A DNA stretch of 64,000 nucleotides from Macrostomum lignano (Eukaryota): assembly GCA_002269645.1 (NCBI GenBank), contig NIVC01002124.1:62001-126000 (forward strand). The letters run 5' to 3'. This document shows, piece after piece, positions 31,201 to 64,000 of this stretch. Under the pieces are notes generated by a model. That model saw only the letters and a list, made by a program, of their open reading frames with translations. It was not told where the DNA came from and did no database searches. The translations under genes were made by a program, and so were the position numbers. Each line of letters begins with the position of its first letter. The stretch's first letter is position 1.

Positions 31201-34200
31201 ACTTCCATCCAAGATTTCAGGACTCTCTGATGCACACTTCCATCCAAGACTTCAGGACTCTGATGCACTTCCATCCAAGACTTCAGGACCCTCTGATGCG
31301 CTTCCACCCAAGATTTCACGACCCTCTGATGCACTTCAACCCAAGACTTCAGGACTCTTTCCGTTGAAAGTCTTCAGAACGCTCACTCAGTCCCTTCGGC
31401 TGGCACTCACCCATTAGTTAGTGTTTCCGAGTGGTCTCAAGTCTTTAGCCTTCTCCCAAAGCAAATTATTATTCGCCTCACCTGTCGCCAGATAATCCTG
31501 GCCATGTCAGTGCGCTGCACCACAATAGACCAGATCAGCAGGTCCTCAGCTTGGTAGGAGCTCCTGTCCCGGCGCGGGTACGGACTGCGCAGCACCCCGC
31601 CAGACTTGGCCGACACGTACAGCCCGACGGCGCGCAGGAGGCGTTCCTGGTAAGCCGTCTGGCTCTCGTTGTGCGTGGCGTAGCCGACTGTCTTGGACTC
31701 GGTCATCAGCCAGCTGGACAGGGGGCTCTGATGGGTTGCGGGAACAGTTGCTTTTCTGCTAGCCTTGCCCTCAAAGTCTACCCCGCAAACGCCCACAGTA
31801 CACTTACGCTCAGGTAGTCCAGCTGCTCTCTCAGACGCATCATTTGTGGATCCGGCTTGTTGATCAGCTGAAGTTTGAAGATGGTGAAATTTGACAGTAA
31901 ATTGCTTTTTGTAATGTAATTTACTCGTTTTTACTGAGGTGGGTGATGAAACAGGGTAGGTGATGAAACAGTGAGGTGGGTGATGAAACAGTGATTTGGG
32001 TGATGAAACAGTGAGGTTGGTGATGAAACAGTGAGGTGGGTGATGAAACAGTGAGGTGGGTGATGAAACAGTGAGGTGGGTGATGAAACAGTGAGGTAGG
32101 TGATGAAACAGTGAGGTGGGTGATGAAACAGTGAGGTGGGTGTTGAAACAGGGTAGGTGATGAAACAGTGAGGTGGGTGGTGAAACAGTGAGGTGGGTGA
32201 TGAAACAGTGAGGTGGGTGATGAAACAGGGTAGGTGATGAAACAGTGAGGAGGGTGATGAAACAGTGAGGAGGGTGATGAAACAGTGAGGTGGGTGATGA
32301 AACAGTGAGGTGGGTGATGAAACAGTGAGGTGGGTGATGAAACAGTGAGGTGGGTGATGAAACAGTGAGGTGGATGATGAAACAGTGAGGTGGGTGATGA
32401 AACAGTGAGGTGGGTGATGAAACAGTGAGGTGGATGATGAAACTGTGAGGTGGATGATGAAACAGTGAGGTGGATGATGAAACAGTGAGGTGGGTGATGA
32501 AACTGTGAGGTGGATGATGAAACAGTGAGGTGGGTGATGAAACAGTGAGGTGGGTGATGAAACAGTGAGGTGGATGATGAAACAGTGAGGTGGGTGATGA
32601 AACAGTGAGGTGGGTGATGAAACAGTGAGGTGGGTGATGAAACAGTGAGGTGGATGATGAAACAGTGAGGTGGGTGATGAAACAGTGAGGTGGGTGATGA
32701 AACAGTGAGGTGGGTGATGAAACAGTGAGGTGGATGATGAAACAGTGAGGTGGGTGATGAAACAGTGAGGTGGATGATGAAACAGTGAGGTGGGTGATGA
32801 AACTGTGAGGTGGATGATGAAACAGTGAGGTAGGTGATGAAACTGTGAGGTGGATGATGAAACAGTGAGGTGGGTGATGAAACAGTGAGGTGGGTGATGA
32901 AACAGTGAGGTGGGTGATGAAACAGTGAGGTGGGTGATGAAACAGTTAGGTGGGTGATGAAACAGTGAGGTAGGTGATGAAACAGTGAGGTGGGTGATGA
33001 AACAGTGAGGTGGGTGATGAAACAGTGAGGTGGGTGATGAAACAGTGAGGTGGGTACGATGCTTCATCATGCTTCTCCCCTTCCGCACCGAGCTGTAGAG
33101 GCCGGCCAGCGTCTCCAGGTTCAGCAGGGTGCCAATGTTGATTCCGTGGTCGAACAGAAGAGACACGAACTCCGTCTGGTTGCGCGCCAGAGCCCGCAGC
33201 ATGCTGTATTCGAGGTCTCGGCCAGTCAGCTGCTCCCACTTGGCCTTCCGTTCTGACGAGAAAATTTCCTGCGCGGCCAGGTCGGGCCGGTTCCAGGCCA
33301 TGGCCATGTTCAGCTGGGTCACCACGCTCAGCGAGGTCTGGCGAAGGAAGGTCGTGAGGATGACTCGGTCCAGCTGCTCGTTGGGGTCCATGGACTCGGC
33401 GTCGTAGACGTTCAGCATGCGCTGATAGTCGGGCTCGGCCAGCTTCATCAGCCAGTCCACCAGGCTGCGCATCTCGCTGGAGTTGGGCTCGAATTCCGAG
33501 GAGAAGTGCTCCTCCGTTATGGCCTCGATCTCGTACCTGGGTGGGCGCAGCGATGATGGAGCTGGATAGAGGGATCTTTATAATGGGATCTGATAGTGGG
33601 ATCCAGATAAGTAGGATCTGGATATGTTGGATCAGGATAGTGGGATCAGGATAGTGGGATCTAGATAGTTGGATCAGGATAGTGGCATCTGGATAGTGGC
33701 ATCTGGATAGTGGCATCTGGATAGTGGCATCTGGATAGTGGTATCTGGATAAGTTGGATCTGGATAGTGAGATCTGAGTGTTGATGATTCAGGCTAAGTT
33801 CAAGAAGTGCTCCCGTACCTCTCGAGCTCCGTGTTCTCGCAGATGTAGGCGATGACGTTGGCAGCTCGGCCGGAGCCCTTGACAACCACGACTGGCGAGC
33901 CGGTCTCGACGCTCACCAACGCCGCTTGCACGTCCTTGCGGCCGCCCTCGATGATGAGGTGCACGCACGGCGTCACGGAGCGCAGGTCGCTGCCGTCGCC
34001 GCGGCTTCGCCGTCGAACCATCTGCTCAGCAACTTTCTTCTCGAAGCTGGCCCGGAAGTCGATCTCGGCGCCGAACATGGACTCGGTGCCGTCGTCGCAC
34101 AGCAGGAAGTGGGTGTGGTGCGGCTCCAGCACCGCCTGGCCCTTCACCGGCGCGGTGTTGTCGGGTTTCGGTAGGTGGACACTGGCAGGTCGTCTTCGAG

Positions 34201-36799: not shown

Positions 36800-38065
36800 T
36801 AGATACGCTGGCCAGAGACCAATGCTGTGTAAATAACCAGGCCATAGTAATGCTGTGTAGATATGCTGGCCATATAGACCAATGCTGTGTAGATATGCTG
36901 GCCATATAGACCAATGCTGTGTAGATATGCTGGCCATATGGACCAATGCTGTGTAGATATGCTGGCCATATAGACCAATGCTGTGTAGATATGCTGGCCA
37001 TATAGACCAATGCTGTGTAGATATGCTGGCCATATAGACCAATGCTATGTAGATATGCTGGCCATATAGACCAATGCTGTGTAGATATGCTGGCCATATA
37101 GACCAATGCTGTGTAGATATGCTGGCCATATAGACCAATGCTGTGTAAATAACCAGGCCATAGTAATGCTGTGTAGATACGCTGGCCAGAGACCAATGCT
37201 GTGTAAATAGCCCGGCCATAGCTCGTAGTAATGCTGTGTAGATATGCTGGCCAGAGACCAATGCTGTGTAAATAGCCCGGCCATAGTAATGCTGTGTAGA
37301 TATGCTGGCCAGAGACCAATGCTGAGTAAATAGCCCGGCCATAGTAATGCTGTGTAGATATGCTGGCCAGAGACCAATGCTGAGTAAATAGCCCGGCCAT
37401 AGTAATGCTGTGTAGATATGCTGGCCAGAGACCAATGCTGAGTAAATAGCCCGGCCATAGTAATGCTGTGTAGATACGCTGGCCATATAGACTAATGCTA
37501 TGTAGATATTCTGGCCATATGGACCAATGCTTTGCAGTTAGCCTGGCCATAGGCTAATGCTATGTAGATATCCTGACCATAGACTAATGCTATGTAGTTA
37601 GCCTGGCCATAGAATAATGCTGTGTAGATATCCTGACCATAGACTAATGCTGTGTAGATATCCTGACCATAGACTAATGCTGTGTAGATATCCTGACCAC
37701 AGACTAATGCTGTGTAGATATCCTGACCATAGACTAATGCTGTGTAGATATCCTGACCACAGACTAATGCTGTGTAGATATCCTGGCCATAGACTAATGC
37801 TGTGTAGATATCCTGACCATAGACTAATGCTGTGTAGATAGCCATGCCATAGACTAATGCTGTGTAGATATGCTGGCCATATAGACTAATGCTGTGTAGA
37901 TATCCTGACCATAGACTAATGCTATGTAGATAGCCTGGCCATGGACTAATGCTGTGTGGATAGCCTGGCCATAGACTAATGCTGTGTGGATAGCCTGGCC
38001 ATAGACTAATGCTGCGTAGATAGCCTGACCACAGACTAATGCTGTGTAGATAGCCTGGCCATAGA
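36800..38065. repeat. 30-32-bp minisatellite (ACCAATGCTGTGTAGATATGCTGGCCATATAG and variants)
   Basis: Read directly. Confidence 0.92.
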
Positions 38066-38589
38066 AAATACAAAAACAAAATCTACTTTAACTTTCAAAT
38101 GCCAACACAGTAATGGCGATGTCATAAAATCAACGGTCTATCATAGAATATAGTTAATAAGCAATCTATTTTGAAAAGAGTTGGCCATCAATTTTATCTT
38201 CAGAATACCGAATAAGTCAACAATACGCTCATAATTGCGGGCCTGCAATTTTGATGTATTACAAACAGGATTACCTGAACAAAGACAGCGACAAAAGACA
38301 GTATAATTACGGCGACAGAAAAGTGAAATAAAATTTAAAATCCGAGGCAAATTTAAATGAATAGACAATGAGGCGTTTAAAAATCTTGAATAATGCATTT
38401 AGCGACCTATATAACAGATTAGGCATGTAGAACGCGGGAAACCTCTTTGTTAAATAGAAGATAAACACATACACGGACGCAGACACGGACATTTCACTCA
38501 TAAATTGTTGATTTGACTTGAAACTAAATACAGTGTAATACAATTATAATATGCTAAGCAGTCACATTCGGTGTAGTAGAGAGCTAAGC

Positions 38590-41500
38590 AGGGGTCAGAG
38601 AAGGGAGAGGGGTGAGTGAAGGAGTCAGAGAATGGAGAGGGTGGATGCAGGGATTAGAGAAGGGAGAGGGTGGATGCAGGGGTCAGAGAAGGGAGACACT
38701 GGCGGCTGCAGGGGTCAGAGAAGGGAGACACTGGCGGCTGCAGGGGTCAGAGAAGGGAGACGGGCGGCTGCAGGGGTCAGAGAAGGGAGACGGGCGGCTG
38801 CAGGGGTCAGAGAAGGGAGACGGGCGGCTGCAGGGGTCAGAGAAGGGAGACGGGCGGCTGCAGGGGTCAGAGAAGGGAGACGGGCGGCTGCAGGGGTCAG
38901 AGAAGGGAGACACTGGCGGCTGCAGGGGTCAGAGAAGGGAGACGGGCGGCTGCAGGGGTCAGAGAAGGGAGACGGGCGGCTGCAGGGGTCAGAGAAGGGA
39001 GACGGGCGGCTGCAGGGGTCAGAGAAGGGAGACGGGCGGCTGCAGGGGTCAGAGAAGGGAGACGGGCGGCTGCAGGGGTCAGAGAAGGGAGACGGGCGGC
39101 TGCAGGGGTCAGAGAAGGGAGACGGGCGGCTGCAGGGGTCAGAGAAGGGAGACGGGCGGTTGCAGGGGTCAGAGAAGGGAGACGGGCGGCTGCAGGGGTC
39201 AGAGAAGGGAGACGGGCGGCTGCAGGGGTCAGAGAAGGGAGAGGGGCGGCTGCAGGGGTCAGAGAAGGGAGACACTGGCGGCTGCAGGGGTCAGAGAAGG
39301 GAGACACTGGCGGCTGCAGGGGTCAGAGAAGGGAGACGGGCGGCTGCAGGGGTCAGAGAAGGGAGACGGGCGGCTGCAGGGGTCAGAGAAGGGAGAGGGG
39401 CGGCTGCAGGGGTCAGAGAAGGGAGAGGGGCGGCTGCAGGGGTCAGAGAAGGGAGACACTGGCGGCTGCAGGGGTCAGAGAAGGGAGAGGGGTGGATGCA
39501 GGGGTCAGAGAAGGGAGAGGGGTGGATGCAGGGGTCAGAGAAGGGAGAGGGGTGGCTGCAGGGGTCAGAGAAGGGAGAGGGGTGGCTGCAGGGGTCAGAG
39601 AAGGGAGAGGGGTGGATGCAGGGGTCAGAGAAGGGAGAGGGGTGGCTGCAGGGGTCAGAGAAGGGAGAGGGGTGGCTGCAGGGGTCAGAGAAGGGAGAGG
39701 GGTGGCTGCAGGGGTCAGAGAAGGGAGAGGGGTGGATGCAGGGGTCAGAGAAGGGAGAGGGGTGGATGCAGGGGTCAGAGAAGGGAGACGGGCGGCTGCA
39801 GGGGTCAGAGAAGGGAGACGGGCGGCTGCAGGGGTCAGAGAAGGGAGACGGGCGGCTGCAGGGGTCAGAGAAGGGAGACGGGCGGCTGCAGGGGTCAGAG
39901 AAGGGAGACACTGGCGGCTGCAGGGGTCAGAGAAGGGAGACGGGCGGCTGCAGGGGTCAGAGAAGGGAGACGGGCGGCTGCAGGGGTCAGAGAAGGGAGA
40001 CGGGCGGCTGCAGGGGTCAGAGAAGGGAGACGGGCGGCTGCAGGGGTCAGAGAAGGGAGACGGGCGGCTGCAGGGGTCAGAGAAGGGAGACGGGCGGCTG
40101 CAGGGGTCAGAGAAGGGAGACGGGCGGCTGCAGGGGTCAGAGAAGGGAGACGGGCGGCTGCAGGGGTCAGAGAAGGGAGACGGGCGGCTGCAGGGGTCAG
40201 AGAAGGGAGACACTGGCGGCTGCAGGGGTCAGAGAAGGGAGACGGGCGGCTGCAGGGGTCAGAGAAGGGAGACGGGCGGCTGCAGGGGTCAGAGAAGGGA
40301 GACGGGCGGCTGCAGGGGTCAGAGAAGGGAGACGGGCGGCTGCAGGGGTCAGAGAAGGGAGACACTGGCGGCTGCAGGGGTCAGAGAAGGGAGACGGGCG
40401 GCTGCAGGGGTCAGAGAAGGGAGACGGGCGGCTGCAGGGGTCAGAGAAGGGAGACGGGCGGCTGCAGGGGTCAGAGAAGGGAGACGGGCGGCTGCAGGGG
40501 TCAGAGAAGGGAGACGGGCGGCTGCAGGGGTCAGAGAAGGGAGAGGGGTGGATGCAGGGGTCAGAGAAGGGAGAGGGGTGGATGCAGGGGTCAGAGAAGG
40601 GAGAGGGGTGGCTGCAGGGGTCAGAGAAGGGAGAGGGGTGGCTGCAGGGGTCAGAGAAGGGAGAGGGGTGGATGCAGGGGTCAGAGAAGGGAGAGGGGTG
40701 GATGCAGGGGTCAGAGAAGGGAGAGGGGTGGCTGCAGGGGTCAGAGAAGGGAGAGGGGTGGATGCAGGGGTCAGAGAAGGGAGAGGGGTGGATGCAGGGG
40801 TCAGAGAAGGGAGAGGGGCGGCTGCAGGGGTCAGAGAAGGGAGACACTGGCGGCTGCAGGGGTCAGAGAAGGGAGACACTGGCGGCTGCAGGGGTCAGAG
40901 AAGGGAGACGGGCGGCTGCAGGGGTCAGAGAAGGGAGACGGGCGGCTGCAGGGGTCAGAGAAGGGAGAGGGGCGGCTGCAGGGGTCAGAGAAGGGAGAGG
41001 GGCGGCTGCAGGGGTCAGAGAAGGGAGACACTGGCGGCTGCAGGGGTCAGAGAAGGGAGAGGGGTGGATGCAGGGGTCAGAGAAGGGAGAGGGGTGGATG
41101 CAGGGGTCAGAGAAGGGAGAGGGGTGGCTGCAGGGGTCAGAGAAGGGAGAGGGGTGGCTGCAGGGGTCAGAGAAGGGAGAGGGGTGGATGCAGGGGTCAG
41201 AGAAGGGAGAGGGGTGGCTGCAGGGGTCAGAGAAGGGAGAGGGGTGGATGCAGGGGTCAGAGAAGGGAGAGGGGTGGCTGCAGGGGTCAGAGAAGGGAGA
41301 GGGGTGGATGCAGGGGTCAGAGAAGGGAGAGGGGTGGATGCAGGGGTCAGAGAAGGGAGAGGGGTGGCTGCAGGGGTCAGAGAAGGGAGAGGGGTGGATG
41401 CAGGGGTCAGAGAAGGGAGAGGGGTGGATGCAGGGGTCAGAGAAGGGAGAGGGGTGGCTGCAGGGGTCAGAGAAGGGAGAGGGGTGGCTGCAGGGGTCAG

Positions 41501-41625
41501 AGAAGGGAGAGGGGTGGATGCAGGGGTCAGAGAAGGGAGAGGGGTGGATGCAGGGGTCAGAGAAGGGAGAGGGGTGGCTGCAGGGGTCAGAGAAGGGAGA
41601 GGGGCGGCTGCAGGGGTCAGAGAAG
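38590..41625. repeat. 30-bp G-rich satellite (CAGGGGTCAGAGAAGGGAGACGGGCGGCTG) with 32-bp variants, ~100 copies
   Basis: Read directly. Confidence 0.97.
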
Positions 41626-42759
41626 AGAGAATAGAGTTACACGGAAATCAAAAAAGCGAATGGCTAAAAGGCGAACCCACACAAGCTAAAAACAAAACAC
41701 AGATAGGAAAGGCATGCAGTACAGCATATACTCGCACAATGTATGCACGGATATAACTAGACATATCACGAGAATAACAGGTTTATCTAGCGCATACTAC
41801 TCCAATCAATTAGTATTATAAGTAGTAACTGTGGGAGAGAAGCAATTTTGAAAAGAAACTAGTATTAAATTCAAAGTAGACGGCAACAATTCACAAAAGC
41901 AGAAAGCTCAAAGAAAGCAGAGCTTTACGAAATTATCAATAACTGCGTAATTACGAGTATAAGTAAATACGAGTATAGCATAACATGGATTTTTGGCACA
42001 AAAAGTTTATAGAAATTATGACCAATAGAACGGCAGGACAATTAATATAAGCGCTTATTAAGCTTCATTAAACGATAATTAAAGCACGGAGTATTAGGCA
42101 TTATTTAGCAAAACTGCAGCCATTTCTATCCATTTTATTCGATTATATATAGTTTAATTTAACTTAACACTAATGGCTTTGTTTTTAGTAGAGGCATATT
42201 AAATAGACATACTACTAAGTTGTGAGTAGAGGGAGTGTCCGCTTTGAAAGAATTTATTTAGGATTTTTAGTATTTTCCTTGGGATCTTGGATGCAACATC
42301 ACAGGCATAGCAACTAGTAATTACGAGCGTAAGGTCAGCATAGCCTGACAGGTAATAATCAGGAACTACCCGAAACAGTTGGCAGCTCCGTTCACTCTAA
42401 GGAAGTACCATTAGTTCGGGAAACTGCTCCGCTTCAGTGTAAATCACAGATATTAGAATAACCAGATGTCACTCGCAAAAATGCGCTTAACTACTTATTT
42501 TCAGTAGCAACATTAGCACTTCTTGCTTTAATAATAGATATTTAAACAGTTTTTTAAGCTGCAAAAATCACCTCGTCAAATTATTAAGGAAGAAATTAAT
42601 TCAAGACTGAAGATTGCAGGAAAACTTGAAAAGCCCAAATCCAGTGCGTGTGCATAGCGAGCAAGAGAAAAGAGAAAAGGGGTGGCGCCACAGCACAAAG
42701 TCAGGCCGATAAACAGTTAGGCTTTGCTCTTGCCCGCTTGTGTCTGACTTTGACCTCTC

Positions 42760-49691: not shown

Positions 49692-51883
49692 TCAAGCCGC
49701 AACAGATGGCGGCGTGACAGCCTCCAATCGGTGCAGGGCCGCAGTAACGCTGTGCGGCAAATGCTGCGCTAGCGAGGCCCGGGTCAGCTGCAGCTGGCAA
49801 AAGTACTCCGGACTGGACCAGACTGCGGCCAGAGCCGGACAGTTGGCCGACGAGGCTGCCTGGCTGTCACGCAGCTGGGCGTAGCGTCTGGCCGCAGGGC
49901 TGCGGGTTTCCACCAGGTGCAGCATCCAGCCGGGGAACACGGCAACCGGCTGGCTGCTGTAGAAGCAGCTGTGCAGACTGGCCTGAGCCAGCAAGTCCGA
50001 TGCCCGGCGCTGCGTCGCCGGGTCGGCATCGGCGGCCGCTGCGTTGCCATCGTCGCTAAGGAGACTGTTGTCATTGGCAACGCGGAATGCCCGTTTAGCC
50101 TGGCAGAGTAGGCTGTCTCCTGGCCGGGCCGATGCTGGGCTGTCCACCTCGGTGGCTGATGGCGGCGGAGCTGCCAGCGCCGCGGCAGCGGGGCCAGGCC
50201 CGTCAACCGGGGATGCTTCGTCGTCGTCATCGCTGTAGCCGCGGCTCGGTATGCTGGCGTAGCCGGCGATTCTGGCGCCGACTCCGACGCTGCTGGCGCC
50301 GACTCCGACGCTGCTGGCGCCGCTGGCGTCGCTACCGACGCTGCCAAGTGTCGCCAGTGAGGAGAGAAATTCGCGAAACTGCAAGCAATGCAAATCGTAA
50401 ACTTAGATGAATTATACAAGCTGTTTAAAGAAAGAAAAAGTTGTCTGGGACAGATGTGTCTGGAGAGATTATTTCGGACAGGTTTCTAGGACGGGTCATT
50501 TGGGACAGCTTTCTAGTACGGGTCATTTTGGACAGGTACATGTACCTAGGATGTATCTAGGTTGTTCTTTTCGGAAAGGTGATGAGGACAGGTTATTTGG
50601 GAGAGGTGTCTAGGAAGCTTATTTCGGACAGGTGTCGTAGACAGGTTGTTTCGGACAGGTGTCTTGGACAGGTGTCTAGGACATGTTATTTCGGACTGGG
50701 GTGTCTAAGGTTATTTCGGACAGGTGATAAGGACAGGTTGTTTCGGACAGGTTTCTAGGACGGGTCATTTCGGACAGGTTTCTAGGACGGGTCATTTTGG
50801 ACAGAGCTGTCTAGAACAGGTTATTTCGGACAGGTGATAAGGACAGGTTGTTTCGGACAGAGGTGTCTAGGACAGGTTGTTTCGGACAGGTATCTAGGAC
50901 AGGTTATTTTGGACAGAGGTGTTTAGGATAGGTTATTTCGGACAGAGGCGTCTAGGATAGGTTATTTCGGACAGAGGCGTCTAGGACAGATTGTTTCGGA
51001 CAGGTGATGAGGACAGGTTGTTTCGGAGATGTCTAGGACAGGTTATTTCGGACAGAGGGTGTAGGACAGGTTATTTAGGAAGTGTCTAGTACAGGTCAAT
51101 TAGGACAGGCTACTTAAAACAGTACTACACCTTAGGCTTGTCGCAGTTGTATAGCGCGCACAAAAGTCTATCCTGAAAGTCGTTAATGTTAGTGATGTTC
51201 ATGTGGCTGAATAGATCTTCGCCTAGACTGCAGCAGCACACGAATTGTTTGCAGTGCTCAGCGAACTCGGGCCTGTAATTACAGTGATGAAAATATGAAT
51301 TATTAATATTGTACTATACCGGTATTTGAATCATACTGTACTCAGCGAAGGGAGGTACATATATTCCTCGGTAAACAAAGATTGACGACAATATATAATG
51401 AGGAGATTAAATATTGGCCTGGGAAGTGAGGGGCGATTTGAGAACTCAGGAGACGGGAAATGAAGCTAATTGAAAAGTGAGGGGGCGATTTGAGAACTCG
51501 GGAGACGGGAAATGAAGCTTATCGGGAAGTGAGGGGGGGCGATCTGAGAACTCAGAAGACGGGAAATGAGGCTAATTACAATGAAAACAGTACGCTATCA
51601 CTCACGTGACAACCTGCAGCGGAGGGGAATAGCAGTAGCACACCAGACGAGGATATTTCCTACGCAGCAGGTAGCCTAGTAGAGCGGCTACACCGGCGCC
51701 AAGGCTGTGGCCGACAACTACCAGGCGATAGTCGGGATTCTCCTCCATGGCAGCCTGCAGCACGGACTCGGACACCTTGGCGTTGATAGCGCGGGCGCAT
51801 TGCACTATGCCAGCGTGGGCTTGATAGGCCGGGGCGGCCTGGTCCACCTGCACCATGGCCACCTGCAGGTCCGTGAGGGCGTC
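49692..51883 (-). CDS. DAGL: Diacylglycerol lipase (lipase class 3), 3' exons only
   Basis: Exons 51883-51606, 51272-51131, 50378-49692, phases consistent. DALTDL, AHAG, catalytic Ser in GHSLGAG, Asp in GED, KPK, VFPGWMLHLV, His in QHLP. No transmembrane N-terminal exons were recognised in the window. Confidence 0.85.
50440..51115. repeat. ~27-29-bp degenerate minisatellite (TATTTCGGACAGGTGTCTAGGACAGGT), DAGL intron
   Basis: Read directly. Confidence 0.8.
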
Positions 51884-52130: not shown

Positions 52131-53040
52131 CTAAAATGTGACAACCGCGATGCTTCCAGGATCACTTCTGACCTTAAGGTTGTAGATTTCACGGTCGATG
52201 GTTGATAATATCCTGTGACCGTGCTTTGTGACTGTTAAATTTGACCAACAAAGTAGCTCGTATTCGTGCACTTTAGAATATGAAGTTTCAAGCTTGACTT
52301 TGATCAAGTCAAGCTCATATATTTGCTTATTAACGCCGAAAAGGAAAGACTCTTTAATTTTTGATCCGTGCAAAGCTAGTTGACTTTTCACCTGAGATAG
52401 TATTTTGTGATGTTCAGCGAGAGTTGGCGTGCCGACAATGTCATCCTGGTACAAGGCAACACTTGGAATATCTCGCAGCAGTTTGTTCATCACTTCCTGG
52501 AAAATCAGAGGGGCAGCGGAAATGCCATGCTGCATGTTAGTTGCTGGCTCTCTTCTGAAAACGCGATCTGTAAGTAGGCGTCTTCGAGATCAATCACGGG
52601 GTAGAAGTTCGAATCCGAGATATTCTGCAGTGTTTCCTTCAACTTAGGCAGCTTGTAGCGGTCAGCATCGAAGATCTTATTTAGCATTACGGAGTAATCA
52701 TCACAGATTCGATCAGGTCGAGCATTCGACCTTCCGACATTCTGGCTTGAGCACCGGAACGATCGGACAGGAGACGAAGGTTTTGACACCGGGTAAATGA
52801 TTCCGGCTGCGATGAGTTCTTCAGCTCCGTTTCAACTATGGAATTCATGGAAAAAAGTAGTGACCTGGCTGGATAGCACTTGCTTTTCAAAGAAACATCT
52901 GGTTTGAGACGGAAGATGGCAATGAACCTTTTAGTGAAAGTTAACTATAGCGACGGTATAAGCTGAAGAGGTCTGATGTAGTTCATTCCAAGTATGCTTA
53001 GAGTGTTAGGCTTGCCAACGAATATTTCACCAATCGCACT
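52131..53040 (-). pseudogene. Decayed Ty3/Gypsy pol (reverse transcriptase) fragment
   Basis: Frameshifted pieces RICDDYSVMLNKIFDADRYKLP, VIDLEDAYLQI, HGISAAPLIFQEVMNKLL, ALYQDDI. Confidence 0.8.
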
Positions 53041-54359
53041 TCTGCTGTCATCGTCTTTCACCTCTCTACGTCTTTTATTACACTGAGCACAGAGGCCCGT
53101 ATATCTTCATGCACCGGGACTTTTCTGGCGGATGATTGAATCTCCAAATCGGTTTTTAGAGCCAGATACCCAGGCAAGGCACTGACATGTCCGTAGCCGC
53201 CTTCCAGCCACACCGAAATTTTAAATGAGTGCCCCAGGTGTAATTTTTATAAAAATGAATCACATATGCTCTTAATTGATTACCCCAAAACATGTTTCGC
53301 ATGGTCGATGTTGTTTCTATGAAAATCTGGCAGTGAAAGTTGGCTTTAGGGCGGCTGAAGGGCGGCTGGAAGGGGGCTAGAGAATTGCTCTGTATTGGCG
53401 CAGTATAATTGTGCCCCAAATGGAAAAAAATTAGATGCAAGTCTTATCTTTAATATGCATAATAAACTTTGGTTCATTGGCTTTTATTTCTTAGAGTAGT
53501 GTGACCTTTAGTTTGAAATTCAGCATTCCAATAGGTAAAAGCGTGCCCCAACCATTTTCTTGACTAGCGGCTAATGCCCCAATGCGGTAAAAAGAAGCAG
53601 GGTCAAAATTTTACTGTATAAGTAAATTTCTGTACATGCCCCACAATTTCCAACTGAGTGGCGAAGTGAAATAACTTGATTGTCACTCAGACACCAGTCA
53701 TTACGACTTACAGTCGAGATTACGACTTTGCAATCGTAAAAAATTAAATTCTAACTTGTTGCAAAGCTTGTCTACTAAATAGACTAATGGACCAATTCAT
53801 AAATTACTATCAATGTGACAATGTCCATGTTGATGGATATGTAATTGTATGTGTCCTTTAGAAATATTAAAAACTGGCATGACAATTGTCACTTTAAGAT
53901 TGTAATCAAATCACTCAATATATTCTATAATCTATATATATGCCTATGTATATTAACACTCAGTAACACTAATATTTCAAACAATAATAGCTAGCTATGG
54001 CTATACATACAGAATTCTACATATGCACCTTCTTATGAATTATGTCATGTATGACTCAAATTTATTCAGAATATGATGCATGCAACTAGAGGAGCTTTAT
54101 ATTAAATCCAACTTTATTGTCACTTTTCTATACAATTAACAAAGTAATAATAATACTAGGCCTAATAGCTAGACTAGCTATTGATATTTAAAAATACAAA
54201 ATTCTAGTAGCTAGGGCCTATTTACAATCTATTTTCTATTTTCTATTTCTGTTTCTATTATATTTACATGTTAGGCCTTACAAGCTAAATATTACCATTA
54301 GCTTCAATATAGTTAGAATGCTTCTTTTTTACTCATTCTTAGCTAACTTGAAAAAAATA

Positions 54360-56466
54360 AGTTCAATAGGCAAAACTTTTAGTCTTTTTTTAATTAACAT
54401 ACATATAGCTATGGCTCATTTTTAATATAATTGTTTGAGTTACAAGTCTAGAATGTAATATATTCTTTAAATCAATAACAAAAATAATTATATTAATCTC
54501 CAAATTATATATTTGATAGATAACTCATATTCACAAAAAACAAAATCTGTTTCTGTGTATAATATACACTCAACATCAAGTGCTTCCATGTTAGTTCCAC
54601 TTGTGCCTTTTTAAGTTTTATATCTAAGTAATAATCTCATATAAACATGATAATTCATGTTTTTCATGTTTCTTGTCAATATCTGCTACTTCCACTCATG
54701 TCCTTTCATATCTGAGTAATGTATATCATATAAACATGATAATTCATGTTTTTCATGTTTCATGTCAATATCTGCTACTTCCACTCATGTCCTTTCATAT
54801 CTGAGTAATGTATATCATATAAACATGATAATTCATGTTTTTCATGTTTCTTGTCAATATCTGCTACTTCCACTCATGTCCTTTCATATCTGAGTAATGT
54901 ATATCATATAAACATGATAATTCATGTTTTTCATGTTTCTTGTCAATATCTGCTACTTCCACTCATGTCCTTTCATATCTGAGTAATGTATATCATATAA
55001 ACATGATAATTCATGTTTTTCATGTTTCTTGTCAATATCTGCTACTTCCACTCATGTCCTTTCATATCTGAGTAATGTATATCATATAAACATGATAATT
55101 CATGTTTTTCATGTTTCTTGTCAATATCTGCTACTTCCACTCATGTCCTTTCATATCTGAGTAATGTATATCATATAAACATGATAATTCATGTTTTTCA
55201 TGTTTCTTGTCAATATCTGCTACTTCCACTCATGTCCTTTCATATCTGAGTAATGTATATCATATAAACATGATAATTCATGTTTTTCATGTTTCTTGTC
55301 AATATCTGCTACTTCCACTCATGTCCTTTCATATCTGAGTAATGTATATCATATAAACATGATAATTCATGTTTTTCATGTTTCTTGTCAATATCTGCTA
55401 CTTCCACTCATGTCCTTTCATATCTGAGTAATGTATATCATATAAACATGATAATTCATGTTTTTCATGTTTCTTGTCAATATCTGCTGCTTCCACTCAT
55501 GTCCTTTCATATCTGAGTAATGTATATCATATAAACATGATAATTCATGTTTTTCATGTTTCATGTCAATATTTGCTACTTCCACTCATGTCCTTTCATA
55601 TCTGAGTAATGTATATCATATAAACATGATAATTCATGTTTTTCATGTTTCTTGTCAATATCTGCTACTTCCACTCATGTCCTTTCATATCTGAGTAATG
55701 TATATCATATAAACATGATAATTCATGTTTTTCATGTTTCTTGTCAATATCTGCTACTTCCACTCATGTCCTTTCATATCTGAGTAATGTATATCATATA
55801 AACATGATAATTCATGTTTTTCATGTTTCTTGTCAATATCTGCTACTTCCACTCATGTCCTTTCATATCTGAGTAATGTATATCATATAAACATGATAAT
55901 TCATGTTTTTCATGTTTCTTGTCAATATCTGCTACTTCCACTCATGTCCTTTCATATCTGAGTAATGTATATCATATAAACATGATAATTCATGTTTTTC
56001 ATGTTTCTTGTCAATATCTGCTACTTCCACTCATGTCCTTTCATATCTGAGTAATGTATATCATATAAACATGATAATTCATGTTTTTCATGTTTCTTGT
56101 CAATATCTGCTACTTCCACTCATGTCCTTTCATATCTGAGTAATGTATATCATATAAACATGATAATTCATGTTTTTCATGTTTCTTGTCAATATCTGCT
56201 GCTTCCACTCATGTCCTTTCATATCTGAGTAATGTATATCATATAAACATGATAATTCATGTTTTTCATGTTTCATGTCAATATCTGCTACTTCCACTCA
56301 TGTCCTTTCATATCTGAGTAATGTATATCATATAAACATGATAATTCATGTTTTTCATGTTTCATGTCAATATCTGCTACTTCCACTTATGTCCTTTCAT
56401 ATCTGAGTAATGTAAATCATATAAACATGATAATTCATGTTTTTCATGTTTCTTGTTAATATCTGC
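54360..56466 (+). repeat. Left inverted arm (verifiable part): AT-rich unique sequence plus ~21 x 89-bp tandem array (54630-56466)
   Basis: Window end AGTTTTGCCTATTGAACT pairs with 54360 onward; unit period 54721->54810 = 89 bp. Confidence 0.95.
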
Positions 56467-56718
56467 TACTTCCAGTCATGTCCTTTCTTATATGAGTAGT
56501 AATTCATGGTTTTCCTGTTTTTCTTATCTTCAATGCTAGGATTCACTTAACCAAGTCCAGTATTTGCTTAGTAGAGTTTGTTTAAGTAAGAAAAAGTGAA
56601 GTAAATGTGACTGTACACTTGTCTTATGTCACTATGTTTCTGTCAACGCTTTGAAGTTATTTTCGATGTTATGGAAGCATGTTTTTGCATGTAATAAAAG
56701 TTATATAATTCATTTCAG

Positions 56719-57936
56719 GCTTTCATTAACGATCCTTTTTCGGTCTTTGAGCCAAAAGGAGAACTGCCCTTACCCTTTCCGGACAAGGAAGTGGTCGTGG
56801 GCATCAGACTAACAGCGACTTGTGTTCGTGTAGCTGCTCAGATCCTAAACATTCCACTGTCCGGTTCTCTGCTTCGAAGGGCTCCTGGAACGAATGTCAA
56901 TTATATTTCGGAAAATGGTTTAGCTCTGGCCTACCGTGATGGTGTAGCAATTTTTCGACATAGAAAAAAATCATCGAATTGTCACCAAGACCATTCCAAG
57001 CGAGCGAAAGCGGCTGCTGCCGGAAAAGAGTGGTTGAAACATAATGGTTGGAAGTTGGAAGAAGAGAGTTCGCAGCTTTCAGCTGTGATTGCAAAGCAGC
57101 ATGTAACAAAGGCACTTGATCATCTGGAGTTGGCTGTATCCGTAGCTCCTGATGAAATACGTAGTATAATTCAAATATCTTTTGCGTGTGTGCATCAGGT
57201 AAAAAACGTGATTGATTCTACTCAATTGTCTACTGCGAGGGGAGCAGAATTTGAGCAGGGAGAGTCAGAAGTGGAAAAGCAGCGAGAACTGGAGAAGCAG
57301 CAAGAGCTGGAGAAGCAGCGAGAACTGGAGAAGCAGCGAGAACTAGAGAAGCAGCAAGAGCAGGAGAAGCAGCAAGAGCTGGAGAAGCAGCAAGAGCTGG
57401 AGAAGCAGCGAGAACTAGAGAAGCAGCAAGAGCAGGAGAAGCAGCAAGAGCTGGAGAAGCAGCGAGAACTGGAGAAGCAGCGAGAACTGGAGAAGCAGCG
57501 AGAGCTGGAGAAGAAGCGAGAACTAGAGAAGCAGCAAGAGCAGGAGAAGCAGCAAGAGCTGGAGAAGCAGCGAGAACTGGAGAAGCAGCGAGAACTGGAG
57601 AAGCAGCGAGAGCTGGAGAAGAAGCGAGAACTAGAGAAGCAGCAAGAGCAGGAGAAGCAGCAAGAGCTGGAGAAGCAGCAAGAGCTGGAGAAGCAGCGAG
57701 AACTAGAGAAGCAGCAAGAGCAGGAGAAGCAGCAAGAGCTGGAGAAGCAGCGAGAACTGGAGAAACAGCGAGAACTGGAGAAGCAGCGAGAGCTGGAGAG
57801 GCAGCGAGAGCAATTATCTTTATCGAGAAAGCGATCGGCAAAATTTGTGAACACTGACAAGAAAGACGGAAATACGACAGCCAAAATAAGTCGCACAAGT
57901 AGGCCTTTGCGCCCAAGACATAAGTTTATCAACTAA
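56719..57936 (+). CDS. Transposon second gene, unknown function, with ~30 x 6-aa EKQ(R/Q)E(L/Q) coiled-coil repeat; first exon/start not identified
   Basis: Frame open from the acceptor CATTTCAG|GCT at 56719 to TAA at 57936; 18-bp in-frame repeat ~57272-57810; basic C-terminal tail. Confidence 0.6.
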   Translation, partial: AFINDPFSVFEPKGELPLPFPDKEVVVGIRLTATCVRVAAQILNIPLSGSLLRRAPGTNVNYISENGLALAYRDGVAIFRHRKKSSNCHQDHSKRAKAAAAGKEWLKHNGWKLEEESSQLSAVIAKQHVTKALDHLELAVSVAPDEIRSIIQISFACVHQVKNVIDSTQLSTARGAEFEQGESEVEKQRELEKQQELEKQRELEKQRELEKQQEQEKQQELEKQQELEKQRELEKQQEQEKQQELEKQRELEKQRELEKQRELEKKRELEKQQEQEKQQELEKQRELEKQRELEKQRELEKKRELEKQQEQEKQQELEKQQELEKQRELEKQQEQEKQQELEKQRELEKQRELEKQRELERQREQLSLSRKRSAKFVNTDKKDGNTTAKISRTSRPLRPRHKFIN

Positions 57937-59197: not shown

Positions 59198-62100
59198 TTA
59201 AAACAAAGCGTACATCGCCAGGTTTAGGCGACCTACATTTCGTTGCCGTCGCAGCGCACCACTGGTAGTCCCGAGGTCGTCATAGTTTAGGACGCTACCG
59301 TCGTCAGAATGTATAGTTGCTACCCAGTGCGCACGCTCTGCTTGAAAGTATGTCGAGCAGAACAGTCTGTATCTGAAAAATATTTAGTTGTACATAACAT
59401 AATGATACATTTAATTTAATAAACAAGTTACTTATTGAACAAAAATGAGTGTCTATTTCTAGTAAAGTCAATATCTAGAACTGCAAATGTGTTCTCCGTC
59501 TGAGAGCATAAAAATTGTACTCGTAGCTTGTTGATCGATAAGTAAAATAATATTGATCGACAGTGTATATAACAACTACTAGTACTTGACACTTCCTTTT
59601 TCGGGTCCAGCACAGCAGCCCTGCATTAGCTAGCTAACACAAGTAATCAGACGATAGTAGAGTACATATATAGAGTGCAAGAACTCACCGAGCAGGGCTG
59701 TTCCGAAAGGGAGTTACCTCTCGTTCTCCCAATGAGACTCGAACAGTTCTATCGACAGAGTCGGGTACAGCAACAACAAGCAGCGGAGGCAATTCTGAGG
59801 AGTACGTCGGTGGCAATACATCTCGCAAACTGTTGCAGTGGCAGCATTCGCGAACGCCAGACTCACGGAAAACAGTGCAGATAAAGCTGTAGGGTGACTC
59901 GATTGGCCCTTCCTCGTGTTGGATTACAAGCCCAGAAAAAAATGATTCCAGTTGTCGATGGCGGCAGGCATCGTTGCGGCAGATGCTTCTTATCAGGAAT
60001 AAATGGCTATTTCCAAGTAACTCCAGAACTATGTCCAGTTCGCTGCTTTCGAGATTTCCGTCAACGATGCTGCTACCGTTTCGCCGCCAACGCAGAAAGC
60101 CTTTGCGCCAGAATGACTCTGTTTGTACTATCAGTGTAGCACGGGCATGCATGGCTTCTTGATCGGTGCGGCTAGCGGTAGCTTCTCTGCAGTACCGGCC
60201 TAGCCGATGAAGCTCTTGAAGTCGAGACGCCAAAATGGCTTCACGGAATGTCTCGCGATCTCTATATGCAAATGCAATACCAGTGAGGAACCCATCAACA
60301 GTACAAGTGTTGTGCAGCATTACTGTTACGAGTTTCCCATTAAAAGGTACACTGGTCGAGCGGCCACCATTTTTTAGAAGAGTAAATTGTTCCTGGGCAT
60401 GATTTGTTAGGTCTCGAAGGAGAACACGCGTCGTAGCTGCAGTGTAGCGTCCTGAAGTGACCCTTCGTTTTTTATTAACTACCTCGGAGCTCAGCGAAGT
60501 TTCTTCGGTCGCTTCGTGGTCATTTAGCATTGATGTGAAAGGGTTCCTGAAAGAACGGGAGCCCTGTAAGTTAGAAATACGAGCATCGCCATCAATTTCA
60601 GGCTGATCGGGGTGACTGGAACTGGAGTTCTCTAACTGCTCGTCGGCGTGACTGGAAGTCTCTGGCTGCTCAGAGTGACTGGAACTGGAGTTCTCTAACT
60701 GCTCGTCGGCGTGACTGGAAGTCTCTGGCTGCTCAGAGTGACTGGAACTGGAGTTCTCTGACTGCTCGTCGGCGGTGTGACCGGAAGTCTCTGGCTGCTC
60801 AGAGTGACTGGAACTGGAGTTCTCTAACTGCTCGTCGGCGTGACTGGAAGTCTCTGGCTGCTCAGAGTGACTGGAACTGGAGTTCTCTGACTGCTCGTCG
60901 GCGGTGTGACTGGAAGTCTCTGGAAGTTCCATAAAGATCCGATGCAACCCCTGCAGGAGCCGACTTTGGTTAGCCAAGAAGTTCCTCATGGAGCTGTCCC
61001 GACCTCCGTGAAGCAGGTTTTTAACGATATTCATCCAGAGCTCCGTGTGGCCTTCCGTGAATCCCTCAGCGTCACGAGAAACACTTTTGAATGCACCGCT
61101 ATTGGACGCAGCATATCTCACGGGATCCAGCATGATACCGCACCAAAGTGGCAGGTATGGCATCACAACATTGGTAAGTTTACCAGCGAGACTGGGGCAG
61201 AAGTACGGATTCGGATCTGGCGTCAGTTCACTCTCACTTTGAACAACTTGTGCTTCGGCACTAGCTTTCACCTCATTGTGCAATGCATCCGCTAGATGGA
61301 AGAATGGCGAAGCTCTCTTCAATGTCGTATCCGGCATTACGTACATGAAACTTTCGGGTGGAACGAAAACTCCGTCTCCAAGTTGATCTGCAGCGGCTGC
61401 GTGCAGAAGAGCGAGTGACGAGTCGACACTCCTCCGAGATGGGCAAAGCAGAAGCCGTAGAAAGCTTTTGTACACTTGCTGTACCTGGTGCAAGCTGGTG
61501 CATCGTAGCAAGGCACCGAAGAAATGCTTCCAACCATTCCTGGCTTCCGGATTCCTGCAATTCGCCACATCAGGCCAATCACAAAACTCGCGCATGATAT
61601 GGCTCCGGCCGAAGCCGATCAACGTAAATTTCTGCAGTTCTTGATAGCTTAATTTAAACGATAGAACGGCATAGCAGTGCCGCAGAAAAGGAATGATTTC
61701 CATGCCGTGAATGCCCATAAGGAGAGCCCGCAAAGTAGGCAAATTAAAATCAAGGGTGACCTGAGCCACGCGAAGATTTTTTACTGATAATCTTGCTGCC
61801 GTGATCCAGGAGTCAAATACAAACTTTAAAGTTGTTCCCGTCTGCGAAGACGATAAAAGTTCCATAACGGCAACGGGTTGCGCTCCAGTTTGAGGATGAC
61901 GCAGTACCACAGCGTGGTAGTAAACATCCTTCTGCTGACTGTCTTTGGGTTTTGAAATAGGCGCTCCGGTTGAATCCATGCCCAGTACGATTGGCTCACC
62001 GTTCGCTTGCATCGAACGCAACACTTCAAAAGCACTGTTCAACCAGAGAGGCACGAATTGGGGTTCCGATGCGCCAAATTGCACACAGACATTCCTTGCG

Positions 62101-62995
62101 TAAGCAGGTTGCATGCTTTGTCCTTGAATAATAAGATCCAGCAGAGTATCAGACGACTGCCGGTCCTGATGTCGTTGCCTACTCGCAGCAATTCGTAGTA
62201 CATTAGGAGATGGCAACAACCGAATGTCCCCATCTGCTGCGATTTCTGCCCTTACCCGCGTGGCACTTGAAGAGCAAACTCTTTTGGCCAATTCAATACG
62301 TCGCTCCCCACATAGAGGACGTGCCTTGGTAGCATGCTTAGTAGGATTCGTTTTGACTTCAAGCGAACAGAGCAACCTGTTTCCAGAGTGGAGCACTTTC
62401 AAACGGAATAGGCCAGTGCAACCATCAACATTGCAGTAAACATCTGCAGATATGTAGCCTGCATTGTGCTTATGCCTGCGCATACACAGGGTGCACTTGA
62501 GTGATGAAGAGAACGACAAAAGAACATAGTCATGCCAGCTCTTTTTCAGATTGCCACTACCATCGAAAACGTGGTCAATGTCAACGAAGCTTTGGTGTAA
62601 TTGCGTTTCAGCTGTTGTACTGCTGGAAGACCTGAAATCAAAACGAAGAAGACGAAATTATAGATGACTATGTCAAAGTTATAAGAAAAGCCAAAGTAAG
62701 AGCGCATCAAGAAAAGCAATACTTACGCTGTATTGCTCGGTATCTCACTCAAAGAATTTCCGGTGATGACAGCCTGAACTTCAGCGATGATATTGCTTCT
62801 TCTGAATTTGTCATAGAGCCATCTGCGACTTGATTCGTTAGTGCCATCAAGACCAAGTAAATCAGCAAGTCTCTGAAGTATGCCATTCGCATTACGCCAA
62901 GTAGGAATCCCAGCGGAAAACTCAGCAACATCAACCTGACCAGATACAATGACCTTCTTGATGTCTTCCAGGGTCACTGAACTAGTGAAATTCAT
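59198..62995 (-). CDS. MULE/NOF-like DDE transposase fused to a USP-like cysteine protease domain, 3 exons, 1128 aa
   Basis: Exons 62995-62727, 62631-59689, 59372-59198 (3387 nt). Donors GC|gtaagt and CG|gtgagt, acceptors ttcag|, both phase 2. Zn finger CNVDGC..H; GMDSTG, TLDFN, RSH, TELWM; NTCTVD, LPPLLVV, AHWVA, YDD. Confidence 0.85.
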
Positions 62996-63051
62996 GGTTG
63001 GTGACAATATCGACAATCACTTGAAGGGCCTGAAATGGAATAATCATAAAG

Positions 63052-64000
63052 GCAGATATTAACAAGAAACATGAAAAACATGAATTATCATGTTTATATG
63101 ATATACATTACTCAGATATGAAAGGACATGAGTGGAAGTAGCAGATATTGACAAGAAACATGAAAAACATGAATTATCATGTTTATATGATATACATTAC
63201 TCAGATATGAAAGGACATGAGTGGAAGTAGCAGATATTGACAAGAAACATGAAAAACATGAATTATCATGTTTATATGATATACATTACTCAGATATGAA
63301 AGGACATGAGTGGAAGTAGCAGATATTGACAAGAAACATGAAAAACATGAATTATCATGTTTATATGATATACATTACTCAGATATGAAAGGACATGAGT
63401 GGAAGTAGCAGATATTGACATGAAACATGAAAAACATGAATTATCATGTTTATATGATATACATTACTCAGATATGAAAGGACATGAGTGGAAGTAGCAG
63501 ATATTGACAAGAAACATGAAAAACATGAATTATCATGTTTATATGAGATTATTACTTAGATATGAAAGGACATGAGTGGAAGTAGCAGATATTGACAAGA
63601 AACATGAAAAACATGAATTATCATGTTTATATGATATACATTACTCAGATATGAAAGGACATGAGTGGAAGTAGCAGATATTGACAAGAAACATGAAAAA
63701 CATGAATTATCATGTTTATATGAGATTATTACTTAGATATAAAACTTAAAAAGGCACAAGTGGAACTAACATGGAAGCACTTGATGTTGAGTGTATATTA
63801 TACACAGAAACAGATTTTGTTTTTTGTGAATATGAGTTATCTATCAAATATATAATTTGGAGATTAATATAATTATTTTTGTTATTGATTTAAAGAATAT
63901 ATTACATTCTAGACTTGTAACTCAAACAATTATATTAAAAATGAGCCATAGCTATATGTATGTTAATTAAAAAAAGACTAAAAGTTTTGCCTATTGAACT
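63052..64000 (-). repeat. Right inverted arm (partial): ~8 x 89-bp array (63052-63740) plus AT-rich unique sequence
   Basis: Reverse complement of the left arm. Confidence 0.95.

Follow-up and report, generated by a model that had tools for sequence, protein, structure and literature searches.

A Foldback-type transposon of Macrostomum lignano whose putative transposase carries a divergent C-terminal USP-like domain

Introduction

Why would a cut-and-paste transposon carry a ubiquitin-specific protease (USP, peptidase family C19) domain? The question is raised by a minus-strand gene in a 64,000-nucleotide stretch of Macrostomum lignano DNA (assembly GCA_002269645.1, contig NIVC01002124.1, forward-strand positions 62,001 to 126,000), which is called the window here and in whose own numbering all coordinates are given. 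An earlier note, made from the letters of the stretch, had read positions 59198-62995 as a spliced Mutator-type transposase fused to a USP-like protease. The gene is best explained as the transposase of a Foldback-type cut-and-paste transposon of M. lignano, autonomous or very recently so, with a C-terminal C19 domain, and we give this reading a probability of about 0.62. The transposase would begin with a DNA-binding region containing Cys and His residues, continue with a D-D-E catalytic set of high divergence (D309, D384, E620) and an expandable acidic linker, and end in a USP-family cysteine protease domain that has a four-Cys zinc ribbon and C866/H1086/D1102 as its candidate triad.

Mobile elements have repeatedly acquired proteases of the ubiquitin and SUMO systems, with Ulp1 found in Mutator-like elements (MULEs) and Ginger, and OTU and VTD found in Helitrons. 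USPs are the largest deubiquitinase family, and a transposase bearing one would be a poorly documented addition to the ubiquitin- and SUMO-cleaving enzymes of mobile elements.

Gene structure and splicing

The gene is read in a single frame through three minus-strand exons (62995-62727, 62631-59689 and 59372-59198) across two GT-AG introns, giving a spliced coding sequence of 3387 nt, that is, 1128 codons plus a TAA stop. Exon 1 (269 nt) encodes residues 1-90, and its in-frame join to exon 2 (2943 nt, seen in the track of open reading frames) across intron 1 (62632-62726; 95 nt, GTAAGT...TTTCAG) is contained in the NCBI entry 'hypothetical protein BOX15_Mlig001973g1, partial [Macrostomum lignano]' (P0001), which is 100% identical to the spliced product. 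The 944-residue open reading frame (ORF) of exon 2 ends at a TGA (59687-59685) lying within a perfect CG/GTGAGT donor (the slash marks the splice site), exactly as the earlier note had described, and this donor opens intron 2 (59373-59688; 316 nt, GTGAGT...TTTTTCAG, phase 2). Exon 3 (175 nt including the TAA) encodes the USP His box, which aligns with the His boxes of USP15 and USP8, and the C-terminus ...LAMYALF; the codons of the candidate catalytic residues H1086 and D1102 lie at 59329-59327 and 59281-59279, respectively. Every motif quoted in the note could be located in the spliced protein, where GMDSTG starts at residue 307, VTLDFN at 381, GHTELW at 617, HNTCTV at 863, CRNDAC at 974, CCHCNS at 1019, LPPLLV at 1037, AHWVA at 1085 and NYDDL at 1100.

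For the second junction, it was the related loci that proved informative. Word-indexed homologue searches, the first of which was swamped by the acidic repeat of the protein, returned only the NCBI M. lignano protein and one further sequence (P0002). When the C-terminal 355 residues were used as query in an exhaustive HMMER search, eight unannotated relatives came up (P0003-P0010, E 6e-21 to 2e-7), and two metagenome scans produced no additional loci. These relatives are singletons, 'hypothetical' or unnamed, from metagenome or raw-read assemblies. Like the window ORF, the ORFs of P0002-P0010 all end about 20 residues past an LPPVLV motif, and in seven related loci (L001, L002, L003, L004, L005, L007 and L009) the stop of the ORF lies inside a GT donor (GTAAGT, GTAACA, GTGAGT or GTAATT) of an intron equivalent to intron 2, with the same site and phase: phase 2, immediately 5' of Tyr-x-Leu/Phe in all seven. 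A homologous next exon is present in L001, L002, L003, L004, L007 and L009, where it reads Y-x-L/F-x-G...(G/N)HY...Y-(D/N)-(D/G)...aromatic tail, collinear with YRLFCSTYFQAERAHWVATIHSDDGSVLNYDDL...LAMYALF (YRL...AHW...YDD) of the window; in L003 this exon is only partial, the contig ending after the GHY motif. Such sequence conservation gives strong support to the use of junction 2. With all joins in frame, junction 1 contained in the NCBI protein and junction 2 conserved in seven loci, the three-exon model and its 1128-residue product, both proposed earlier, are confirmed.

The ATG of the transposase lies 57 bp from an 89-bp tandem array described below (interval 62996-63051), and with so little room between the two the promoter is probably within the inverted arm of the element.

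The C-terminal domain

The part of the putative USP domain encoded by exon 2 (59689-60389, residues ~838-1070) contains, in order, an LLKNGG motif, the HNTC Cys box with C866 (codon 60305-60303), a helical thumb, the zinc-ribbon Cys pairs (candidate ligands C974 and C979, then C1019/C1020 and C1022) and LPPLLV. When a profile of the family (alignment A2) was compared with all PDB sequences, it matched USPs only, with USP9X (2.2e-6) followed by USP8 (2.6e-4), USP15 (7e-3), and then USP2 and Ubp8. The alignments span both Cys pairs, LPPVL, Y-x-L, GHY, YDD and the terminal aromatic-L-F. The NTC box is collinear with LGNTCYMNSILQCL of USP8 (LGNTCYMNS), a segment that is weak by itself, GHY aligns with the GHY of USP8 and USP15, and YDD falls on the FDD region of USP15. 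Used as a query by itself, without a profile, the C-terminal sequence matched the PDB at noise level only (BamD, E>1).

The candidate triad is well kept among the members in which it can be read. The Cys is present in 10 of 10 (as NTC or STC), the His in 7 of 7 (as GHY, NHY or AHW), and the first Asp/Asn in all 6 complete sequences (YDD in four, YDG and YND in one each), the His being followed by this Asp/Asn at 15-16 residues. Conservation in homologues had been named as a check in the earlier note, and the triad it suggested is kept in these sequences as Cys, His and Asp/Asn. A further motif, L-L-x-N-G-G, is nearly invariant about 20 residues 5' of NTC and is followed by a beta hairpin and then by NTC; one idea suggested by this arrangement is that an insertion has here divided the USP Cys box (G-L-x-N-x-G-N-T-C) in two.

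In the AlphaFold model of the C-terminal domain, residues 40-245 have a predicted local distance difference test (pLDDT) score of 75-93. Model residue 66, corresponding to C866, forms the N-terminus of a helix (66-81, pLDDT about 80-90), which is followed by a helical bundle (the thumb) and then by beta strands or fingers bearing the Cys pairs. Nearly all of the top 50 Foldseek matches of this model in the PDB are USPs, the named ones being Ubp8, USP30 (probability 0.99), USP2, USP14, USP18, USP12, USP46, USPL1, USP34 and PAN2, while Foldseek against viral structures gave no relevant named match. The structural check proposed in the note came out in part: USPs do stand first among the fold matches, and co-location of the three triad residues cannot be read from a model whose exon 3 part has pLDDT <50. 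Taken together, the profile and model evidence indicates a divergent USP (C19) domain in the C-terminal third; the USP-like character claimed in the note holds up, with profiles matching USP9X, USP8, USP15, USP21 and USP2, a Foldseek list led by USPs and a conserved Cys/His/Asp set.

Conservation of the fusion

In four relatives (P0002, P0006, P0008 and P0009) the E motif of the transposase and the USP domain are present in a single ORF. The E motif reads WTEGHTERW in these fused proteins, or AVESDF in P0002. Over the USP region their identity to the window protein is 16-30%, and the terminal intron is common to all of them. Judged from these sequences, both the fusion and the triad are conserved in a small set of eukaryotic relatives that carry no annotation, and the joining of transposase and USP domain is old and no local capture.

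The N-terminal region and linker

The putative DDE catalytic region (60981-62003, residues 300-640) contains D309 (GMDSTG; 61976-61974), D384 (VTLDFN; 61751-61749), H434, W586, E620 (GHTELW; 61043-61041) and K627. The three acidic residues are matched by D, D and E in P0002 and in the L001 protein, and five sequences extend over E620 and K627 (E-x6-K), both of which are invariant among them. Upstream lies a Cys/His-rich region (62310-62498, residues 135-197) with C136-x2-C139 and C156-x4-C161...H189. Its C-x4-C-x24-27-H spacing is shared by the window and L001 proteins, making it a possible zinc-finger DNA-binding domain. The note had seen a WRKY/GCM1-like finger here; the C-x4-C...H spacing and four predicted beta strands, at pLDDT <50, may hint at one, and Pfam FLYWCH, WRKY and FAR1 have no match in the N-terminal region. 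The N-terminal AlphaFold model as a whole has a pLDDT of 40, and its Foldseek matches are generic beta sheets without meaning.

Between the transposase and USP domains lies an acidic, Ser/His-rich linker (60601-60923), encoded by an in-frame 63/129-bp tandem repeat (SSHSEQPETSSHADEQLENSS)n. In P0006 this position is occupied by another acidic repeat, so the linker seems free to expand.

The Foldback element

The gene lies in a Foldback-type element of about 10.7 kb, whose termini read ACTGACATG... (terminal bases ACTGACATGTCCG). Its left arm starts at 53181 (ACTGACATGTCCGTAGCC...) with an outer, non-array part (53181-54615) and continues as an 89-bp tandem array (54616-56498; 21.2 copies by Tandem Repeats Finder, 98% matches) that has an inverted match to 63052-63744. 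The latter interval, on the far side of the gene, is the array of the right arm (7.8 copies, inverted with respect to the left one), and it is followed by the outer part of that arm (63745-64000), which is cut by the window end and is identical at 256/256 positions to the reverse complement of 54360-54615. Over its whole length, 63052-64000 is an inverted repeat of 55309-54360 (99.3%). The inverted arms are ~3.3 kb long and 99.3-100% identical, with arrays of unequal copy number (21.2 against 7.8). The right arm should extend about 1.18 kb past the window end, the full arm being seen in a second copy of the element.

This second copy (L006; NCBI NIVC01000212.1, the contig of P0001) has the same anatomy of inverted arms and arrays. 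It is 99.8% identical to the window copy over 7,074 bp, with 14 differences, only 3 of which fall in the unique internal sequence (~6,500 bases). The window copy begins at 53181 with the L006 terminus, its other end lying past the window; the outer left arm is identical to L006 at 1432 of 1435 positions, beyond which the flanks diverge, and the L006 flanks have no match in the window. Both arms of L006 end in ACTGACATGTCCGTAGCC and are identical at 1452 of 1455 positions, and on either side of the copy stands a perfect direct repeat of 9 bp, CCTAGTCAG. Two nearly identical copies in unrelated surroundings, together with a target-site duplication, show that the element has transposed recently. 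The window copy is intact over its 1128 codons, and the sole coding difference in L006 is a C to T change at a CpG (window position 60083), which turns CGA into TGA (R940 to stop). This is why the NCBI protein ends at ...FLRWR: the annotated entry is a truncated allele without most of the USP domain.

A 2.9-kb non-long-terminal-repeat retrotransposon (L006 6949-9893), with an 856-residue ORF that matches RVT_1 (1.3e-34) and RNase H, sits in the 89-bp array of one L006 arm and is absent from the window copy.

It was this setting, which formed no part of the evidence in the earlier note, that pointed towards MULE/Foldback. Long inverted arms bearing subrepeats and a 9-bp target duplication, the latter inside the MULE range of 8-10 bp (L006 copy), support a MULE/Foldback-like anatomy. 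Target duplications are 8 bp in hAT and 7-8 bp in P/Galileo elements, and these and other superfamilies fit the 9-bp duplication less well, with no homology result speaking against them.

Discussion

Gene structure, element anatomy, mobility, USP homology and the conservation of fusion and triad make up the demonstrated part of our explanation, and several observations weigh against the remainder or limit it. On the transposase side, no Pfam family matches the window protein or nine relatives at E<=10, and the N-terminal profile matches no PDB chain, so the word 'transposase' would derive from the context together with a D-D-E conservation that is read in just 3-5 sequences. As for the USP domain, Pfam UCH and UCH_1 have no match at E<=10 in the window protein or the nine relatives. 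When the spliced L007 and L009 sequences were added to the alignment, the resulting profile (A8) gave weaker USP matches (USP9X 7.8e-3, USP15 0.011, USP21 0.05) and spurious designed TPR repeat proteins ranked first. These intruders come in through summed weak repeats with the motif Y-x-L-G-x-x-Y-Y-x-x-G-x-Y, and among non-repeat PDB chains both profiles match USPs only. The Foldseek matches have E values of ~1.5e-3 and TM-scores of just 0.25-0.31 (probability 0.9-0.99). The model drops to pLDDT <50 over its residues 246-328, with the whole of exon 3 among them, the alignment being without depth there for want of spliced homologue sequences, and the triad geometry cannot be read in that part. 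In addition, the canonical oxyanion Asn at -5 from the Cys is absent, a caveat that the earlier note had rightly raised, and the GHY of relatives is represented by AHW in the window copy. Finally, the stop at R940 truncates the USP domain in L006, and at least one of the copies is therefore defective.

Because homology to MULE transposases was detected by neither Pfam nor PDB searches, we have not filed the protein as a MULE. The 'Mutator-type' label of the note is accordingly not sustained at the level of the protein: there is no Pfam transposase model at E<=10, the profile search finds no solved transposase, and the N-terminal model is unusable. With known Foldback-type MULEs such as Muta1 (Aedes), Tm1 (Meloidogyne) and FB/NOF (Drosophila), the window element has in common long inverted arms that consist partly of tandem subrepeats with unequal copy numbers between the arms, a 9-bp target duplication, and a Cys/His region followed by a putative D-D-E set (for these features of Foldback-type MULEs, see PMC5499845, PMC3169594 and the Dfam note on NOF_FB). 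It differs from them in its far longer arms (3.3 kb), its 89-bp unit and the absence of Pfam MULE/transposase homology. In Muta1 the catalytic residues have been defined experimentally as D214, D283 and E419, along with W401 and a (C/D)xxH motif 15-45 residues after the second Asp (PMC5499845). The distance between the two Asp residues is similar in the window protein and Muta1 (75 and 69), whereas that from the second Asp to the Glu is 236 as against 136. Within the family only P0002 has a (C/D)xxH motif (DVAH, +45), the others having GRSH at +50, and the aromatic residue 5' of the Glu is not an invariant Trp, since W586 is replaced by Phe or Tyr in relatives.

The C-terminal domain resembles the C19 enzymes in the order of its motifs: an NTC Cys box where a helix begins, a helical thumb, fingers that bear a four-Cys zinc ribbon, a strand with LPPxLxV, a His box of the form Y-x-L...GHY, then Y-D/N-D and a terminal aromatic-x-L-F. 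Its nearest counterparts are USP9X, USP8, USP15 and USP21 by sequence, and Ubp8, USP30, USP2, USP14, USP18 and USPL1 by fold. The spacing from His to Asp is 17 in USP7 and 15-16 in this family. Unlike those USPs, the window domain stays below detection by Pfam UCH, is without the Asn at -5, has a beta hairpin of ~20 residues between NGG and NTC, and is fused to a transposase with no other USP accessory domains.

Whether such a domain would be catalytically competent divides the possible explanations. We regard it as somewhat more probable than an even chance that the domain is enzymatically active, as a deubiquitinase or a ubiquitin-like protease, and that its substrates are the transposase or host factors present where transposition takes place. 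By contrast, the domain may keep the USP fold and be catalytically dead, as in PAN2 or USP39, in which case the transposase would use it to bind ubiquitin or other proteins, or to oligomerise. The missing oxyanion Asn, the silence of Pfam UCH, the AHW of the window copy and the presence of PAN2 pseudo-USP structures among the fold matches are all in its favour. Pseudo-USPs, however, typically lose the catalytic Cys/His/Asp, and here the Cys, the His and the first Asp/Asn are kept wherever they can be read, despite an overall identity of 16-30%; moreover, the invariant N-G-G some 20 residues 5' could, as an idea, supply the missing Asn. A dead module is on balance unlikely, with a chance that is still worth carrying. 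Much less can be said for a processing protease of the viral-polyprotein kind that would cut at or near LLxNGG, or in the linker, and so free the transposase. Coronavirus PLpro is a Gly-Gly-directed processing enzyme with a USP fold, and the nearly invariant L-L-x-N-G-G just 5' of the Cys box does present a Gly-Gly end like that of USP substrates; yet the residue four before the would-be cleavage site varies (K, P, R, Q or S) and is not the Leu of ubiquitin or LxGG, the motif runs in the model into the first strand of the domain, so that cutting there would enter the domain itself, and no ubiquitin-like domain is seen in the protein. We consider this the least probable of the alternatives.

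The remaining alternative denies the product itself, making the locus a domesticated or decaying one, the exon 3 join purely computational and the TGA at 59685 the true end. The partial NCBI model with the premature stop of its source copy, and the retrotransposon inserted in one copy, could be taken in this sense. The window copy, on the other hand, is intact over 1128 codons, the arms are 99.8-100% identical with a perfect 9-bp duplication, the two copies have unrelated flanks and only 3 differences in ~6,500 unique internal bases, and both the exon and the intron position are conserved in seven other loci. A protein that stopped at 59685 would also be without the His box that all relatives keep. 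This explanation is consequently improbable, if slightly less so than a processing protease.

If the preferred reading of a mobile transposase with a C19 domain is right, the USP domain would travel with the transposase and act in cis or nearby, where it could remove ubiquitin, or a modifier resembling it, either from the transposase or from host proteins present at the site of excision or insertion. The transposase might thereby be stabilised, or the DNA-repair and chromatin response modulated. Comparable roles have been proposed for the Ulp1 and OTU domains of transposases by Bao, Kapitonov and Jurka (PMC2836005), and suggested for the VTD and OTU domains of Helitrons by Erven et al. (PMC9741609). 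A bolder version, which we put forward only tentatively and with the odds against it, sees in the window protein the first example of a clade of active USP deubiquitinases that is carried by transposons and has yet to be described, and in which the Cys box GLxNxGNTC is split by the beta hairpin and the Asn of LLxNGG serves as the oxyanion residue; the clade would be carried by an unclassified DDE lineage in Foldback elements, and its activity would be required for transposition. Such activity might then counter ubiquitin-dependent destruction of the transposase, or edit the ubiquitin on histones or repair factors at the break.

Fusion of C19 with a transposase has a precedent in Trichomonas, for which Gladyshev and Arkhipova 2009 is reportedly the source. 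The earlier note knew of no described USP-type fusion, and that statement needs to be narrowed: Trichomonas vaginalis XP_001314237.1 consists of transposase_11 and peptidase C19, as noted by Bao, Kapitonov and Jurka in 2010 (PMC2836005). That protein, likened here by description only, is likewise C19, but its transposase is IS5-like and differs from that of the window. A full-text literature search for USP or C19 together with transposase, MULE or Foldback found nothing besides this remark, and a survey of MULE diversity lists no USP (PMC6446971). Better documented is the cargo of other classes, namely Ulp1 (C48) in MULEs and Ginger1, OTU in Ginger1, Helitrons and MuDR-6_HM, and VTD in Helentrons (PMC2836005, PMC9741609, PMC6446971). 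The window protein shares with these the general arrangement of a papain-like ubiquitin or ubiquitin-like protease C-terminal to, or beside, the transposition enzyme. The protease class differs from the Ulp1, OTU and VTD cargo, and the fusion forms a multi-member, animal-type family with a conserved intron within a Foldback element.

The compact USP domain, of ~290 residues, has been overlooked by current domain models, just as the transposase of the family falls outside Pfam recognition. The element is very young and near-intact, its host is a flatworm that can be transformed, and its second copy has a naturally occurring nonsense mutation within the USP domain; this allows a genetic test of whether ubiquitin removal matters in cut-and-paste transposition.

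Other features of the window

The element contains a second ORF on the plus strand (56791-57936, 381 residues), whose middle is an (EKQ[RQ]EL)n repeat, for which 30 tandem copies of an 18-bp unit code (57272-57811). Pfam assigns it to no family, L006 has a called gene in the corresponding position, and it could be an accessory protein of the element.

Outside the left terminus the element sits amid other repeat debris. A reverse-transcriptase remnant on the minus strand (52131-52789; RVT_1 E=1.8e-6, YQDD) lies ~400 bp beyond that terminus, and further tandem arrays (27/56-bp unit GGACAGGTGTCTAGGACAGGTTATTTC; 52-bp unit) are found 5' of the element at 50471-51109 and 51424-51577. Farther away, extreme strand asymmetry is observed in 2-kb windows at 4001-6000, 12001-16000, 32001-34000 and 38001-42000, where GC skew reaches +0.57 or -0.64 and AT skew falls to -0.77; these stretches are probably satellite or low-complexity DNA.

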